From contig JALDTO010000288.1 in NCBI GenBank assembly GCA_023515725.1, positions 131,214-195,213 on the forward strand: 64,000 bases of DNA. The letters are read 5' to 3'. The notes beneath the pieces are model-generated. The model did no database searches. It had not been told where the DNA came from and saw only the letters and a program-made list of their open reading frames with translations. The translations under genes and the position numbers were made by a program. Positions 44,450 through 64,000 of the stretch are shown piece by piece. Source of the DNA: Amoeboaphelidium protococcarum X5 (Eukaryota; Fungi; Aphelidiomycota). The first letter of the stretch is position 1. Each line of letters begins with the position of its first letter.

Positions 44450-46321
44450 TCAAGCACAAGTTGCTGCGTGACCAAATCTACTTAGATTATACGTGTTCAG
44501 ACAGCCATCGGTAAGCAGACGCGTAAGTCTTTCATTAGCGCTTGTGTCGCCACTAGCTGCTGCTGCTTCATACCATCGCAGAGCTTCGTGAAGATTCTTA
44601 TCAACACCCAAACCTTTTTCATAGCAATTTCCTAATTAAAATTGAGCCGCTGTGTGATTCTGCTCTGCTGCTTTCCTGAACCAATACACGGCCTGTTGTG
44701 GATCAGAGTTGCATCCGACTCCGTTCAGATAGCACTGGCCTAGTTTGTTTTACGCCCTTGCATGCTCCTAACACGCAGCCTTATGATACCAATGGAATGC
44801 AACTTCATCGCTTCTCTCCACACCAAGTCCCTCGGAATAGCAAAAGCCGAGATTACATTGAGCCCATGGATTATTCTACTATGCAGATAGTAAATACCAC
44901 TTAGCAGCCAGTTTGTAATCTTTAGCAACTCCAATTCCATCTTCATAACAGTAGCCGAGAGAGTTCTGAGCAAGAGCATTGCCCTGTTCAGCGCTCAGAC
45001 TAAACCACCTAGCAGCCTCAGCAGGATTTTTCTCAACACCAATTCCATTTCTGTAACAGTAACCCAGACTGAGTTGAGCAGGGGCATGACTCTGCTCGGC
45101 CGACTTTGTATAAAATTCGACAGCTTTCTGATGATCCACAAGTACACCAATGCCGTTTTGGTAACAGTATCCCAAACTATGGTAAGCAAACGCGTTACCA
45201 TGCTCAGCCGACTTGGTATACCAATGTACAGCCTCATAGTAGTTCTAAGGGACACCAATACCATTCTGATAGCAGTAACCCAAGTTGTGTTGCGCACGAG
45301 AATGCCCTTATTGTGCAGCCTTCAGATACCATTGCGCACCGATAGCCTCATTTCTCTCAACACCGATTCCGTTTTGGTAGCAGTAGCCAAGATTGCACTC
45401 AGCCCATGGGTATCCTTGTTCCGCTGATCGTGTGTACCAGGTGACTGCCATTAAAGGATCTGGCTCAACACCAATACCATCCTCATAGCAGTAGCCAAGT
45501 GAATTTTGAGCAAAGGCATTACCTTACTCAGCACTAAGTCTGTACCACTTTACAGCCTCAGTCTCATTCTTCTCGACACCAATGCCATCTTCATAACAAT
45601 AACCTACATTGTAAATGGCCACAGATTCTCCCTACTGAGCAGCTAGTAGATAATAACGCATTGCCTCTTGCTCATCCTTCTCGACGCCGAAGCCTTCTCC
45701 ATAACAGTAACCCAGAATGCCTTGTCCACGAGGATGACCTTGAGCAGCAGACAGCTTGTACCAGTAAACAGCTTTACGATCATCCTTATCAACACCGACA
45801 CCATCGTGGTAGCACACTCCCAGTGCATACTGTGCAGAGGCGTCAGATTCTTGTTCAGCAGCGTTGATGAGCCACTCCACAGATTTTGATCCGATTGCAT
45901 TAGCACGCTGCTGCCACTCTTCAGCTTCAACGCGGTTGATCTTCACACCCGGGCGACCGTACTTTCGCAGAAATGCAAGGCGCGCACAACACAAGCCATC
46001 ACCCAACATTGATCCATCAATGTAAAGCTTTTCAGCACCCTTGAAATCCATCTGAATACCAATTCCAAATTCATAGCAGAAACCTAGTACACCAAAAGCC
46101 TCAGGAAGCTACCGTGTGACGGCTTGCGCGAAGTAATTCACAGCCTTTGTTTCATCTCTTGCCTCATTGTCTTTGCCAAATAGAAATCTCTCTCCGAGTT
46201 TTAAAAGCGCTTACGCACGCGTTTACTCTCTCGTCGACAAGTAATTTCTGCTGAGTCGATTGAACACGCTCTTGGATTATGAATATAGCGTGTTTGATAC
46301 CTTGTTACAACCTTGAACCAT
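44450..46321 (-). CDS. Sel1-like repeat protein (623 aa)
   Basis: More than 12 tandem ~36-aa repeats of AQxxLGYCYxxGIGVxxDxxxAxxWYxxSAxQG. Confidence 0.92.
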
Positions 46322-55806: not shown

Positions 55807-56022
55807 TCAGTATTTCACTTGTTACCTATACATGGAGCCAGTAATTTTTTCATCTCTCTCTTCCATCACGTAGTCAAAGTAGTCCATTGCTCGTCTACGA
55901 GGCAGTCCTTGTGTCTCAAAGGATCGGTAATACCAATCCAGCATACTTCCAGTGGCAACACAAAGACCAGTGATTCCAGCAATAGGTAAAAGAGAACTCC
56001 ACGGGACTTGATATCTCGGCAT
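55807..56022 (-). CDS. NDUFA1: NADH dehydrogenase subunit NDUFA1 (MWFE)-like (71 aa)
   Basis: VPWSSLLPIAGI (TM)...RRRAMDYFDYVMEERDEKITG. Confidence 0.8.
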
Positions 56023-56893
56023 ATTAATATTTTGTCTGCTGTGTAAGTAATAGGAGAGATTGGGGTTGGATGAACACTTTCTTATTATCAACTTGCAGAG
56101 TTCTACGGAATCCGAGAGCCGCAAAAGCGCGTCGCTATTTAAAAAGCAGAAACGAATATTTGTTTCTTACAACTGTTTTTGTTTTTAATGTTCGAGAGCC
56201 GCAATCAGTGCCTCACATTAATACATAACGTTTTTGCACTTGTAATACGCGAATGCGACTTAACAAATTGATTAATTTTTGTGATTACTTTCTTATTTAT
56301 ATCATGCTGCAAAATCAAATGTATTAGTCATGCACCGTGTGTGTGTTGCTTTACTTTAATGTGCAACTTGCGCAACTGCAGCAGTATTGGTGTAAATATC
56401 TCAAGATTTTTAATATAGCAGTATTTGCTCCGCTTCTCTAGTAAAGAAATATATGCACCAAACCTCAAGCAAAAATTTGCAAACTGTTTGTGAGTAGTGG
56501 TTGCTCGATCTTTGTCACAACTGATTGCTTGATGCGTTAATCTCGAAACTGGCGCTTGCAATTTAACAGTAAGTAAGCGATTATTTGTGATAAATTGTTT
56601 TGATACTGAATGATACTTTATTATCTCTTACACACTATTCACTAAACTACTTTTTAACAACGTACAATCTTATTTGCGAGATAAGCATACAGGTATAAGC
56701 AATGCAGCATTGGGACGCCGTAGTGTTGTCATTACTTGCTGCGCCACCCCCCTTACGCCACTCTAAGATCTTACGCAATCATATTATTAATAACAGCTCT
56801 CATAGTTCAGATAACTAAAACGCGACAAATATACGCAATCTCTTTAGTTGATATCTATATCCTAGTGTCTTTTGAATAGAATCAGTATCAAGC

Positions 56894-58909
56894 ATGTTTA
56901 ATCCGTTGTAAGATGTGTTATGTCCCAATTCGTCCGGACTCAAAAGGGAGGACTGTCATTGTGCTGGATGTAAATCTTGGCAATAGGCGCAAGCCTAGTT
57001 GATGCATTCACAAATGCAATTTGAGTAAAAGAAAAAGCTTGCGGTGCAGACAAGAACCGAGTCAATGGTAAATAGATTGCACAGTGGATACCAGACTAAG
57101 CCGCCGCCCCCTGTTCATAGAAACGGTCCTGGTAGTGGAAATAGAGGTTTGACGCGTAAAAACGCGCTGGTGCAAATTAGCATTGTCCCTTGTATTTCAG
57201 GATCAAAGGTTGGATAATTTAAGCGTCTGGAAAATGTTGGCCCATAGATGATTTAGATTGACAAGTATAATGACAATTATCAATCTGTCTTAGCATAAGC
57301 TTGTGCATTGTTTCACTATCAAGTTGAGCAATCGTCAATTGGACAAAGTCAAATCCACCAAATCCCCTAATTTGGAGTTGATTTTGACGTAATATAATGG
57401 ACCCAGAATATTCAATTGGCAGGATGTAAGTATACCTCTAATAAGGATAAGGTGCTATATTTGATTCCGTTGGTTGAAAGCAATCGCGTGTAATTGCATC
57501 CTAGTTTAAAGAGAAACTATGAGTCTCTACAGTAGCTGAATTTTTTGAATGTCGAGGACTTTGATTACTAGTATGGTTTGCCAGATGAGAAGATGCAGGA
57601 TAAGGATGATTTTGAAATTGTTGAACCGACGCGTACTTTAGATGAGCCTATTATTCAACCTGTCAAGCCTGTCAAAAAGATCAAATCTGCGCAGGAGTCT
57701 ACGATCATACCTGTCAGTTCAAATGTTGCGAGAAATAGTTAGATTGAACATAAGAATAAGTTTTGCTAGTTTGAAAACATTTCCAAGGTGTCCCCTCAGC
57801 GTGTAATAAAAAATACGCGCTCCTTGTAAGGCAGTGTGGTTGTGCATGTCTACGACTATGAAACAGGCTCCTGGTTCACTGAGGATCCAGGAGTAGTTGG
57901 AATGCCAGATCTGGCAGGAAAGACTAACAAAGGGAATATAAAAAGATGCTACTATAATGGATCTCTGGTCAAGTTTTTTCCAGATCTGCCAGTAGTCTTT
58001 AAGTGCGCAATTGATAAGGATGACGATGATTATGGATTACATGCTAGGGAAATATTAAACTCTGTTTGCGCTCAAAGGTGCTTCCTAGATTTTGACGCGG
58101 AATTGATTAAGACGCTGCTGGGTTAAGAATATCTATAGGTTGCTGGTGAGTAGCGTGGAGTTTGTGCTGGCGTGATGCTGGAGATTAGAGACAAATAAAA
58201 TGAGGAATTTGGTGATATGGTGGATCTAGCAAAGATATGGACAGTTGAACCCTTCGTAGATGGCCAATTTGTGAAGTATATCGACAACGAGCATTTTATG
58301 CAAATTTGTGATGATGATCAGACTTATGAGGAGAACTTTCGTGAAGAAGTGGCCTGGGCTTTTGCCCATTACTCCTATTATTGGTTTGAGAAGGAGAACT
58401 ACGAGTAAATGATAGTTGATATTCAAGGCTCTAAGTGTCACTTTACAGATCTTTAGGTGTGCACTGTCAATGGCACCGATTGCAGTATTGGCAATATGGG
58501 TTTACCAGCAATTGTGAAGTTCTTCGTTATGCACTAGTGCAATTAGATTTGCAAGGCTTTGCATTTAGATGTCGCGACCATTCCGTCTTTAGTAATGGAG
58601 AAGATTATGGAAGATTCTCTCTTAATGGATAAATTCGAGTCCACTGTGTTTGGATCTCCAGCATAGGCCGCTCCTAATCCTCTTGGATAGTAGAAGACAT
58701 CATTGAAGTCGGATGTCTCCATAACTTCTGTGTCTAAACAGGTAGAAGTTAATAATCAAGCCACTCAGGATTTGCAGATAGTAAAGGAGAAATCTAAGAT
58801 TAAGTTGGTGGATCCTATTGTTAAAAACATACGTCCGTCTAGCAGAAGACCTAATACGCGTGCTAAAAATGCTGCGTAGAAGAAATTGCCAACTTTGACT
58901 GAGGATTGA
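56894..58909 (+). CDS. Alpha-kinase (eEF2K/MHCK family) carried inside the transposon (~671 aa; 5' end uncertain)
   Basis: VVFKC, WTVEPFVDGQFVKYIDN, AWAFAHYSY, MIVDIQG, FTDL(Q)V, GNMGLPAIVKFFVMH(Q)CN(Q)IC zinc site. Confidence 0.88.
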
Positions 58910-58994
58910 GTATTTAGTAGCTCTGGTGGAGTTAACAATGAGTACGTAAAGATAGTAATAGCAATAAGAAATTTTTAATTATTCAGACCATTCT

Positions 58995-60374
58995 TCACTA
59001 AGCAATTTCCTACCCTCTCACTTACTATTCTGCTATCAACAATTAATCTCTAAATGCATCCAGCGCGCTTACGAGATCGCCATCGGACACTAAAGCCTTG
59101 AACACATCTTGACAATTGTCAAAGGTAAGTTGATCAAAACCTTTCTCTATAACAACTTCATCAATAAGATGCCTAGCGTAATTAATTCTAAACCTATCAT
59201 TCATATCTATAGTACTTGGTCCAAACAATTGAATAGCCATATCACGCATGTCTTGAGGAGGCTCCAAACCACATTCTACTCCATCAAACATCTCGGGAAC
59301 TTGATAACGCATGATGGGCTGTCCTTGATTTCGAATCTTATGGTAATTCCACAAGGTGGTAATTTTATCTAAACACTCAGCGATATAATGTCCAAAACAA
59401 TACTGAGAAATTGTCTTATGAGAATAAAGCGTGGTATTAAAATAACCTGCAAAGTGAAGATTGTTCAGCGTTCCTATCCAATATTCAAGCCCATAATGAT
59501 TCTATCTGCCCCAGTAACTTTCTATACGCGTATTGAAATTGGATGAACCCACAATATAAGAGTTCTCACCTACCAATATTTCTTGCAATTACTTGATGTA
59601 ATTGTTCTCAGTTCCGCCATCAACACGAACTTTTCCAGGCATAACATTGCATTTGTCAGCCGCATCCAGAAAATATTCCAGTATGTAACGCGCGGGCCTA
59701 TTCGTATCTGCGACCATACTAAACACAACATACCTACTAAAACCATCTACACACGCACTTATTCCAAAGCCAAACTACGACAGCTTATCGAAGCCATCTA
59801 TATGCCACACTTAATTAGGACCATCATTTTAATATTCACGGCGTTTCAACTTGCGCCTTTTACGCATTTACACAGCCTCTGGATTGTCGAATCTTTAGCA
59901 AACCATAACCATGTCTCGAGATACTTATTGGCCTGATAGTTCACGAAGGACTTATGTAGTTGATCTAATTCCCAATCTTTCACCTTCATCCTGATTTACA
60001 ACATGCACTAAATCCAAAACTTCGACAGGAGATAGCGCACAATGTCTCGTTCCAATTTAATGCTGCGACAAAATCGATTGCAAAGTCCTTAAGGACATTT
60101 AAATATTATGCTTCTATTTCAGCCAATCCAATAATTATTGTTAAGTGGACCCGCCATTAATTAGATGGCGAGCTTCTTCAATCCAATGTTCACTTTAATC
60201 CGCAAATGTGGCTCTATTTAAAGCAGTACTCAATCCATGTTCAGTCATAAACCGGTCCAATTTGGACTTGGAGCAGATTGTTCCACTAGAATTTAGAGTA
60301 TCTAAAATTTCCTTGCGCTTCAAACCTTAATTTACTAACTGCCGTACCTGTTCCAAGTCGATTTCTTAAGACAT
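58995..60374 (-). CDS. IS3-like DDE transposase/integrase with N-terminal HTH (Clr5-like) repeats (459 aa)
   Basis: LKRREYQNDGPNQVWHIDGFDKL..ISACVDGFSRY..PGKVRVDGGTEN..GSSNFNTRIESYW..WNYHKIR; D, D and E all present; ORF intact under TAR=Gln. Confidence 0.9.
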
Positions 60375-60726
60375 TTTGCTGCAAAAAATGAATTCGAGTT
60401 AAGATGTCCCCTATTATAAGGCGGATATAGTGCATGATAAGAAACAAAATAGCAATGAATTTATTTTTAAAATTACAAAACAAAATAAAAATTAAAAATC
60501 ATTTAAAATATTAATGGGAACTTTCATTTTACTTTCTATGTTTAGTAATTTTAAACTGCGAGGCGGTTTTGCGTTTCTCGAACTCCGTAGAGTTCGGTCA
60601 GCCTCTGAGAGAAGGAAAGATTCAACGAAGCGTGTTGCGTCCTTCGAATGCTTTCACCTTCACGCTCCAACCGCCATTTCAAGAAAAAGTATAAAATCGA
60701 GTGATCAAACATTAACAGCACTAGGC

Positions 60727-61302
60727 ATGTCTATCACATCTGATATTTAGAAATAATACCAAGATGTCTATCAATTTTTACTGAAGCAAGATGAGATTAA
60801 ACTGGCAAAGAAGGTGAGAAAATCATGCTTGAAGAAGCACGATTTTGATGTGTCCAAGCCGGTGTCTTCTACCTCTTCTAATGAGAATGTGGTCAATGCA
60901 AATGACACCAAATCATCATCTTCAGTATCAGTGCCAGTATTGGAAGAAAGAAAGCGAAAGACATCCGAGTCTTAGTCTGAGGATCTGAATCCAATTGACG
61001 CGTCAGCAACTGCAGTGGATTCTCTTAAATAGGCTGCCAAGAAAATTAAGCAAAGGTTTCAGAGGGTAGATCCTAAAGATGTGCAATTTGTCGATGATAG
61101 GTTGAAAGATAACACGTTTCTTGCGAAAGGTGGTGCAACTCAAAACAGCTATGGATACAAGGCCAATGAAGATCTGTCTAAGGTGAGAGGTAAAGGATTT
61201 ACCAAGAGTAAAAATAAAATGAAGAAGGGATCGTATCGCGGTGGAGCCATTGACACCAAGACACATTCCATCAAGTTCAGCACTAGTAGTGACGAGGAAT
61301 GA
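60727..61302 (+). CDS. SRP40: SRP40/Nopp140-like nucleolar protein, short form (191 aa)
   Basis: LisH-like start (DVYQFLLKQDEIKLAKK); C-terminal FQRVDP..LKDNTF..YGYKANEDLSKVRGKGFTKSKNKMKKGSYRGGAID..SIKF. Confidence 0.88.
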
Positions 61303-61689: not shown

Positions 61690-63330
61690 ATGGATTATGT
61701 CAACGTTAGAGAGCATAATGTGTATCCCTCTGGATCAGGCAGCTCCTATGTTGGTAGCGCTGTGGCCGCTGCAATGGTAGATTCTAATGATTGGAAATTT
61801 AACTTCACCGAGCATCTGCTGAGATTTTAAAGCGCTAAAGAAATTGAAACTGTAAACTCTGCAGCGGAGGTTGTGCGCGTCAAATTGGAGGAGTTGGCTG
61901 ATATGCCGGAGGACACTTAAGAATATGATACAGTGACCAACGTGATAAAATTGCTGCAATGCGCGACTGATGCACTGTAAGGAATTTCTCACAGTTTTGA
62001 GTGGAAGAGAGAGGTGGAGATGCCGCGCAATGTTGTTGGATAATCAGAGGAGAATAAGTTTGATAATTATATGATGAGTAGAGTCTATTGGCCTAGGATT
62101 AGCATTTTTGATCTAATGTTGCCAAAATCTGATGTTGATCAAATTATCGGTCCTCTTGCTTAGATCAAGCAGAATAGCGAATTGTCTTAGAAATTGTAAC
62201 AATATACTCTGCAAGATGGGCTCTTTGGTATCGGCTTTATTCAACGTGTATTTCCTATGCTGCCAAGCCACGATGTCAGCTGTATATTTGGAGAGGAGTG
62301 GTATGTTTACGTACCATTGATGTCTCATAAAAGCCTTTACATTGTGCGCATAGATTTGTGCGATATTTATGGCACTGGTAAAATCATCATTGCTAGGTCT
62401 GGTCGTCTTTAAGGCGTGTAAATGGCCAACCGTCTGACGTCCTGGGTAAAATGGGCGATCAGAGTGTATGAACAGTTGCAAACGCGCGCTAATCTACAGG
62501 TGACCCCCCTACTCATGACCACCATACTCATGTCCACTTACCCTTCTTAAATCGTGATTTTTTAGTATGTTATAATTTCGAATACGCTGATTCCGAAAAT
62601 ATAATTTTTCAATTTTTTTCAATATATGAAATTTTGGACAGGCACGGTTTGGACCTTAACTCATGTCCATATCGCTCCTCACTTGTTTCTAACAGATCGT
62701 TCCGCGGAGCTAACAAACGCTAATATCAAAGGCCCATATCAGCGACTCTAATTCGCAATTTAAATATATTGAAGAATATTAAGACATACTTACGTTACTT
62801 AAAGATATTAAAATCGAACTACAACAAAAAATTTCTCAAAACGTTACTATATTGGGCATTTTCATTGAGGTGGACATGAGTCGACTCGTGTCCAGTGATC
62901 GCGCGCGTTTTCCTGTAATTTTAGTGGACATGAGTAGGGGGGGTCACCTGTATTGAATGCACCAGTTGCATAGTACTGCTGGATTGCTCCTCATCTATTA
63001 TGCCGGATTTTCCCAAATTTGGATCATTCCAAGTTGGTTGCTCGACCATCATTTTACAATCCTATATACATTGATTAAGATCAGGGCCATGTCTACAAAT
63101 TATACAGCTTTTGGACTGCTAACTTATGTCCTGTTGAAAATGAAATTAGGAAAGATCCTTTTCTATGTGATGGATGGTATCTTCGAGGTACCGTATTAAA
63201 GAATGCCTCTCTACGAACAGGGCGACTTGAAACAGAATCCGCCTCGTGACTTCAAGAAGCTAGTGGATGTGTTAGTGTAAATTGTAACCATATTGATACA
63301 TTTAGCAGAGAAGCGTAAATTTTACGGTTA
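61690..63330 (+). pseudogene. Disrupted gene with a C-terminal protein-kinase-like region
   Basis: ORF from ATG 61690 continues in frame once the MITE and one TA are removed (..RANL|LNAPVAQYCW..GHVYKLYSF); +1 frameshift near 63200 before MPLYEQGDLKQNPPRDFKKLVDVLVQIVTILIHL; then runs into the satellite. Confidence 0.65.
62497..62950. mobile_element. Non-autonomous Tc1/mariner-type MITE (454 bp)
   Basis: TA duplication at 62495-62496 and 62951-62952; TIR CAGGTGACCCCCC(C)TACTCATG[a/t]CCAC; subterminal ACTCATGTCCA repeats in both orientations. Confidence 0.9.
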
Positions 63331-64000
63331 GATCATGAATCTACCGGAGAAATTACGGTTAGCTGTAACAACTACAATTCAGACAGCAGCACTTCGCTGA
63401 ATGGAATTTCTAGTGTAAATAAGTGCTAGCTTCATCAATTGCCAAGAATTAAATAAGAGACTGTGCTTTACCGGGAGTTCCCAGCGTGATAATGGTGAAG
63501 CGTAAATTCTACGGTTAGATCATGAGGCGACCGGAGAAATTACGGTTAAAAGTAACAACTACAATTCAGACAGCAGCACTTCGCTGAATGGAATTTCTAG
63601 TATGAATGAGTTAAACTGATCGTCTCAGTGGAGAGTACTCCGCAGCTGTGCTTTACCGGGAGTTCCCAGCGTGATAATGGTGAAGCGTAAATTCTACGGT
63701 TAGATCATGAGGCGACCGGAGAAATTACGGTTAAAAGTAACAACTACAATTCAGACAGCAGCACTTCGCTGAATGGAATTTCTAGTATGAATGAGTTAAA
63801 CTGATCGTCTCAGTGGAGAGTACTCCGCAGCTGTGCTTTACCGGGAGTTCCCACCGCGATAATGGTGAAGCGTAAATTCTACGGTTAGATCATGAGGCGA
63901 CCGGAGAAATTACGGTTAGCTGTTACAACTACAATTCAGACAGCAGCACTTCGTTGAATGTAATTTCTAGTATGAATAAGTGCTAGCTTCATCAATTGCC
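63311..64000. repeat. Tandem satellite, 185-187 bp unit, at least 3.7 copies, continuing past the window end
   Basis: Units start with AAGCGTAAATT at 63311, 63498, 63683 and 63868; two variants of a ~45-bp segment in the order A,B,B,A. Confidence 0.93.

Follow-up and report, generated by a model that had tools for sequence, protein, structure and literature searches.

Elements of the eukaryotic IS3EU superfamily of DNA transposons have been listed in Repbase since 2013; they group with GingerRoot, have TA..TA termini, and usually produce 6-bp target site duplications (TSDs) (PMC10045372). Their transposase is of the integrase-like DDD/E type without the HHCC motif, and its first Asp lies 100-300 residues from the N-terminus (PMC10045372). 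Described IS3EU members encode two proteins (PMC8232023). Kojima (2025) reported IS3EU elements of rusts and truffles that have TAYGG..CCRTA ends and 6-bp TSDs and whose transposase and alpha-kinase genes point in opposite directions (PMC12730594, section 4.1). In the literature searched, this is the sole paper that joins IS3EU with an alpha-kinase, and its brief mention neither proposes nor tests a function. Alpha-kinases are strongly expanded in rusts, with 79 and 39 genes in two of them (PMC4469406; also PMC5295586), and the passages on the expansion in these reports draw no link to transposons. The initial annotation of the present locus, in an aphelid, regarded its combination of transposase and kinase as an undescribed system. 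Because the pairing was already catalogued, an outcome that the annotation itself had named as decisive, this claim of novelty fails. New here is a compact, TET-less, intronless, and very recently active IS3EU member in an aphelid.

The window, which is the whole stretch of 64,000 nucleotides that was analyzed, contains many long ORFs when TAA and TAG are read as Gln and almost none under the standard code. The UAR = Gln code is known for the aphelid Amoeboaphelidium protococcarum (PMC5304391). The transposon occupies positions 56104-60589 (4486 bp) with TACGG...CCGTA ends, and its insertion site is between the divergent NDUFA1 and SRP40-like genes (Table 1). All parts of the element as first described (terminal inverted repeats [TIRs], length, TAC..GTA ends, and exact GAGTTC duplication) were found, the TIRs being imperfect (~78% over 37 bp, with 12/14, 29/37, and 33/45 matches). 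None of 200,000 random pairs of 37-mers drawn from the window reached the level of 29/37. The exact repeat of the 12-bp TIR core at 56193 is a candidate additional binding site for the transposase. An LTR element or a Polinton was ruled out because no LTR, reverse transcriptase, or polymerase is present between the ends.

Table 1. Features of the transposon and its flanking genes (positions in the window)
Feature	Position	Strand	Remarks
Host gene NDUFA1/MWFE	55807..56022	-	PF15879, E 1e-8; outside the element; start ~80 bp from left end
Left TSD copy GAGTTC	56098..56103	.	Exact match to right copy; other genome copies have other 6-bp TSDs
Left TIR, begins TACGG	56104..56140	+	29/37 matches to right end
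Subterminal exact repeat of 12-bp TIR core (56113-56124)	56193..56204	+	
Alpha-kinase ORF, 671 aa	56894..58909	+	TAA/TAG = Gln, no introns; PF02816 (Alpha_kinase), 81 bits (cut-off 21.3)
Spacer between convergent stop codons	58910..58994	.	85 bp
DDE transposase ORF, 459 aa	58995..60374	-	PF24764 (rva_4), 98 bits (cut-off 26); D193, D252, E285
Right TIR, closes CCGTA	60553..60589	-	29/37 matches to left end
Right TSD copy GAGTTC	60590..60595	.	Exact match to left copy
Host gene with SRP40 C-terminal domain	60727..61302	+	PF05022, E 3e-28; start codon inferred; outside the element

Other repeats were observed elsewhere in the window. A MITE-like segment of 458 bp (62495-62952) has a perfect 15-nt inverted repeat, whose outer ends both include TA, and further copies of the arm in its interior; it may be Tc1/mariner-like, and the genome search found a single copy. 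A tandem array at 63274-63981 consists of approximately four 185-bp units, two of which are identical. Within a minus-strand ORF of 638 aa, a 108-bp (36-codon) repeat array spans 44600-45823, and its period suggests Sel1/TPR-like repeats.

With TAA and TAG read as Gln, the two convergent ORFs of the initial annotation are indeed uninterrupted; the transposase frame contains 26 TAR codons over its entire open length, and the kinase ORF contains 28 internal TAR codons. The convergent layout could give rise to overlapping transcripts and self-silencing RNA. An Atlas search with a transposase piece also led to rva_4. In the catalytic triad, 32 residues separate D252 and E285, and the HHCC motif was not seen in the translation. 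Basic residues clustered at aa 171-179 resemble an NLS and plausibly serve as a nuclear signal. A single-sequence fold of one transposase piece gave only a low-confidence model (pLDDT 39). The enzyme had been called an IS3-like DDE transposase. The DDE triad is in place, and transposase pieces, which were short and of low power, matched the eukaryote-type rva_4 model but none of the bacterial IS3/IS481 NCBIfam models. Membership in the prokaryotic IS3/IS481 group is not supported by this result, by the ends (TA..TA, not TG..CA), or by the absence of rva_4 from 14 control genomes.

The other gene encodes a protein with a Cys-containing N-terminal region, an alpha-kinase domain at ~aa 340-560, and a Ser/Thr- and Lys/Arg-rich tail. 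The intact VDIQG, TDxQ, and HxCNxxC motifs that had been read from the sequence are borne out by the PF02816 match and by the residues themselves: VDIQG (D509), TDLQ (D519 and Q521), and K370 for catalysis, and H492 together with HxCNxxC (H547, C549, and C553) as the zinc ligands. In a global alignment with the host-type kinase of the same genome (score 41.5, shuffled maximum -3), the P-loop, the lysine strand, and the C-lobe motifs align, and the helix-C region aligns loosely; the P-loop Lys of the element kinase is replaced by Arg in the host-type kinase. Because the translation has no signal peptide or hydrophobic membrane segment and the tail is basic, the kinase is predicted to act inside the cell, and its residues are those of a putatively competent Ser/Thr alpha-kinase. 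A secreted effector was ruled out by the absence of a signal peptide.

The genome contains 17 full-length copies at 100% identity, one of which bears a single non-coding substitution. In addition, one copy is interrupted and several ends coincide with contig breaks or gaps, giving 21 left and 22 right ends and ~20 insertions altogether, which amount to roughly 0.4% of the 23.6-Mb assembly. Exact 6-bp TSDs, all different, flank 10 of the 16 copies that have flanks, and an eleventh spans the interrupted copy; the remaining flanked copies comprise two with swapped TSDs, three that are one base off, and one that is irregular. Target choice shows little sequence preference; the GC content is 0.57 in the TSDs versus ~0.39 in the flanks. 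At the homeologous locus (C264:549481-551643), the coordinates place both flanks 1 bp apart with the element absent, and this is the empty site whose search had been suggested; homeologous regions of the genome are 87% identical. What moves is a unit of fixed length (4486 bp), delimited by the TACGG..CCGTA TIRs and flanked by a 6-bp target duplication, and practically every copy retains the two genes intact. The two-gene mobile unit and the recurrence of kinase plus transposase between TIRs, both anticipated in the initial annotation, are thereby substantiated.

Variants of the element at 99.3-99.5% identity are also present on two JGI metagenome contigs (L050 and L051; samples 3300048586 and 3300048833). 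The 99.5% variant (L050) carries both ORFs and a right flank unseen among the copies of this genome. Judging from these sequences, the host or a close relative occurs in both samples. An assembly artefact is an extremely unlikely source of the numerous identical copies. The 100% identity could raise this suspicion, as could a contig that consists of the element alone (C104) and the copies at contig breaks or gaps, and polishing of the assembly may partly account for the near-perfect identity. However, the copies differ in their flanks, and each is bracketed by a 6-bp duplication of its own (chance ~1e-31), the homeologous site is empty, and an independent metagenome holds a variant at another site.

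Several copies have peculiarities of their own. Two copies in opposite orientation (L011 and L012; G000:C142:18577-23062 and 361907-366392) have reciprocally swapped TSDs, which probably reflect a ~340-kb inversion by recombination between them, or else a misassembly. The interrupted copy (L018/L019; G000:C146:608889-617419) is broken inside the kinase ORF by an insert of ~4.0 kb that contains a long ORF, has GG..CC ends, and is flanked by a target duplication of 9 bp; the insert is Mutator-like judged by the TSD length. At the irregular left junction of L016 (G000:C69:102076), 6-8 bp of the right-flank duplication sits 13-15 bp from the left end, and the intervening short TACG..CGTA stretch resembles an excision footprint. 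Past the scaffold gap that ends L021 (G000:C264, ~1091760-1093258), a frame of 423 aa containing a Walker A motif resembles, by eye, the D5-like primase-helicases of Polinton-like or viral elements.

No end among the 21 left and 22 right ones belongs to a kinase-less deletion derivative, so the copies without a kinase that the initial annotation had considered as a counterargument did not appear. Such a result is also expected from a very young burst and is not proof that the kinase is needed. The truncated copies L020 and L021 were ruled out as true deletion derivatives, as both stop at scaffold gaps.

Since the full copies are all identical, selection cannot be measured among them. The element kinase was compared by the Nei-Gojobori method with two decayed, frameshifted relics of an older related family (C212 and C233; ~84% DNA identity), at dS of ~0.5-0.7. 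The dN/dS values were ~0.06-0.13 in the kinase core, including 0.06 for aa 481-560 in the C-lobe (dS 0.70, Fisher p 1.5e-11). Higher values were obtained for aa 289-375 (0.22) and for the tail (0.33). Because the relics decay neutrally after insertion, these values are upper bounds for the active lineages. By this comparison, the kinase has evidently been under strong purifying selection between element families, in agreement with the earlier view that it is maintained. The tail of one relic kinase is broken by a short fragment resembling a Copia reverse transcriptase by eye (L022:2119-2273).

Of the 20 PF02816 matches in the genome, 19 are the element or its relic, in line with the suggestion that such elements are a route for alpha-kinase expansion. 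The remaining locus is the host-type kinase (L030; G000:C98:489738-490280), which is 26% identical to the element kinase; it has an in-frame TGA between two catalytic motifs, which may mark a pseudogene, an intron, or readthrough. As dN/dS against the relics is low and the only host-type locus is so distant and contains this TGA, the kinase is neither newly captured from this host nor a passive passenger. A recently captured host gene hitchhiking without function, as in Pack-type elements, is very improbable and largely refuted, even though fragments of host genes are common in GingerRoot elements (PMC6839031) and the identical copies themselves are silent on selection. The dN/dS of 0.06-0.2 rules out neutral cargo, the sole host-type locus is itself broken, and IS3EU elements of rusts and truffles show the pairing as well (PMC12730594). 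The kinase gene appears to be a standing component of this IS3EU lineage.

What this gene does can be addressed by comparing three kinds of role. The kinase might be kept for the benefit of the host cell (signalling, stress, or parasitism of the algal host), with the element as a vehicle only. The element copies are the sole intact PF02816 genes found in the genome, and PGTG_17927, an alpha-kinase of comparable size (711 aa) from a rust, shows increased expression during infection and evolves under diversifying selection (PMC4150398). We nevertheless consider such a benefit unlikely, because no intact, immobilised, TIR-less kinase copy was found in the genome, the older relatives carry frameshifts and are decaying, as is typical of transposon genes and not of domesticated ones, and the protein has no secretion signal. 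Alpha-kinases include eEF2K, which controls translation, and selfish elements can encode such functions. The kinase may be a selfish toxin in an addiction system or an eEF2K-like translation modulator that protects or drives the element without acting on transposition. This is likewise improbable: there is no third gene as a possible antidote, ~20 copies are tolerated, and no eEF2K accessory domains were recognised in the pieces searched. The decay of old copies without domestication and the lack of an antidote candidate weaken these two roles. On balance, the sequence evidence favors a regulator that serves the element itself, and only a slim chance is left for roles outside these three.

Based on DDE chemistry and the features described above, the following mechanism can be proposed for the element-serving kinase. 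The transposase would bind the TIRs, possibly together with the subterminal core repeat, cut the element out, and integrate it with a 6-bp stagger. In the least certain step, the kinase may phosphorylate the transposase complex or nuclear chromatin or silencing proteins of the host, and thereby promote or time transposition. By analogy, the TET/JBP anti-silencing genes of fungal IS3EU would be consistent with an element-serving kinase, without being evidence for that role. A more far-reaching version, which we offer tentatively and rate at somewhat less than even odds, is that the kinase is an ancient dedicated component of one IS3EU lineage, predating the split of aphelids and fungi, and phosphorylates the transposase or the host silencing machinery to license transposition. 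If this is true, a DNA transposon would be regulated by its own protein kinase, and the rust alpha-kinase expansions would be explained as transposon genes.

The assignment to IS3EU/GingerRoot rests on the termini, TSD, TIR length, transposase type, and the presence of two proteins. The element has TA..TA (TAYGG..CCRTA) ends, a 6-bp TSD, TIRs of >30 bp (37 bp, 29/37), and an integrase-like DDE transposase without HHCC whose first Asp is at position 193; it encodes two proteins, and its alpha-kinase is in opposite orientation to the transposase, as in the alpha-kinase-bearing fungal IS3EU. The IS3EU-type termini and TSD recognised at the outset (TACGG..CCGTA and GAGTTC) therefore match the published features. 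We estimate a probability of roughly 85% that it is an autonomous IS3EU/GingerRoot-superfamily DNA transposon of the alpha-kinase type described in fungi and that its burst was very recent. Searches with short, stop-free protein pieces, which as short queries have no bearing on rarity, gave no matches among representatives or in viral and metagenome scans; homologue searches with such pieces returned only near-identical JGI fragments of this element, and a PDB search with short pieces gave only a non-significant kinase match.

This element extends the pairing of IS3EU and an alpha-kinase beyond Dikarya and represents its simplest form, with two intronless genes in 4.5 kb, very recent mobility, and a kinase under purifying selection. 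Because of this simplicity, recent mobility, and strong selection, it would be a good reagent for studying the function of transposon kinases. It also shows directly that a burst of an IS3EU element can account for almost the entire set of alpha-kinase genes in a genome, a point relevant to the interpretation of the rust expansions.

Among the known systems, the closest are the fungal elements IS3EU-1_PGra, IS3EU-7_PSt, IS3EU-3_PCor, and IS3EU-1_TuIn (PMC12730594), which share with it the TAYGG..CCRTA ends, TIRs of >30 bp, 6-bp TSDs, and oppositely oriented genes. They have Dikarya hosts and a TET/JBP gene between the two genes, whereas this element resides in a TAR = Gln aphelid and has only the 85-bp spacer at that place, and is thus not a TET+ IS3EU. 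They were compared by description, which does not state whether the genes are convergent or divergent, and the kinases are taken to share a common origin. The host alpha-kinases (eEF2K, MHCK, TRPM7, and vWA kinases; PF02816) share the catalytic Lys, DxQG, TDxQ, and the His/His/Cys/Cys zinc site with the element kinase, which differs in its flanking regions, in being transposon-encoded, and in the low identity to the host-type locus noted above. The wider IS3EU/GingerRoot group (Repbase; PMC10045372, PMC6839031) has in common with it the integrase-like DDE transposase, TA..TA ends, 6-bp TSD, two proteins, and a mild preference for GC-rich targets; in contrast, Selaginella GingerRoot has TIRs of 100-150 bp and host gene fragments, with no kinase mentioned (PMC6839031). 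Styx/REP9 of Zymoseptoria (PMC8232023, PMC10853768) is also related to IS3EU and resembles the aphelid element in its TIRs, 6-bp TSD, recent bursts, and association with chromosomal rearrangements (in the aphelid, the probable inversion between two copies), but it has four genes, none described as a kinase, whereas the aphelid element has two, one of them the alpha-kinase.
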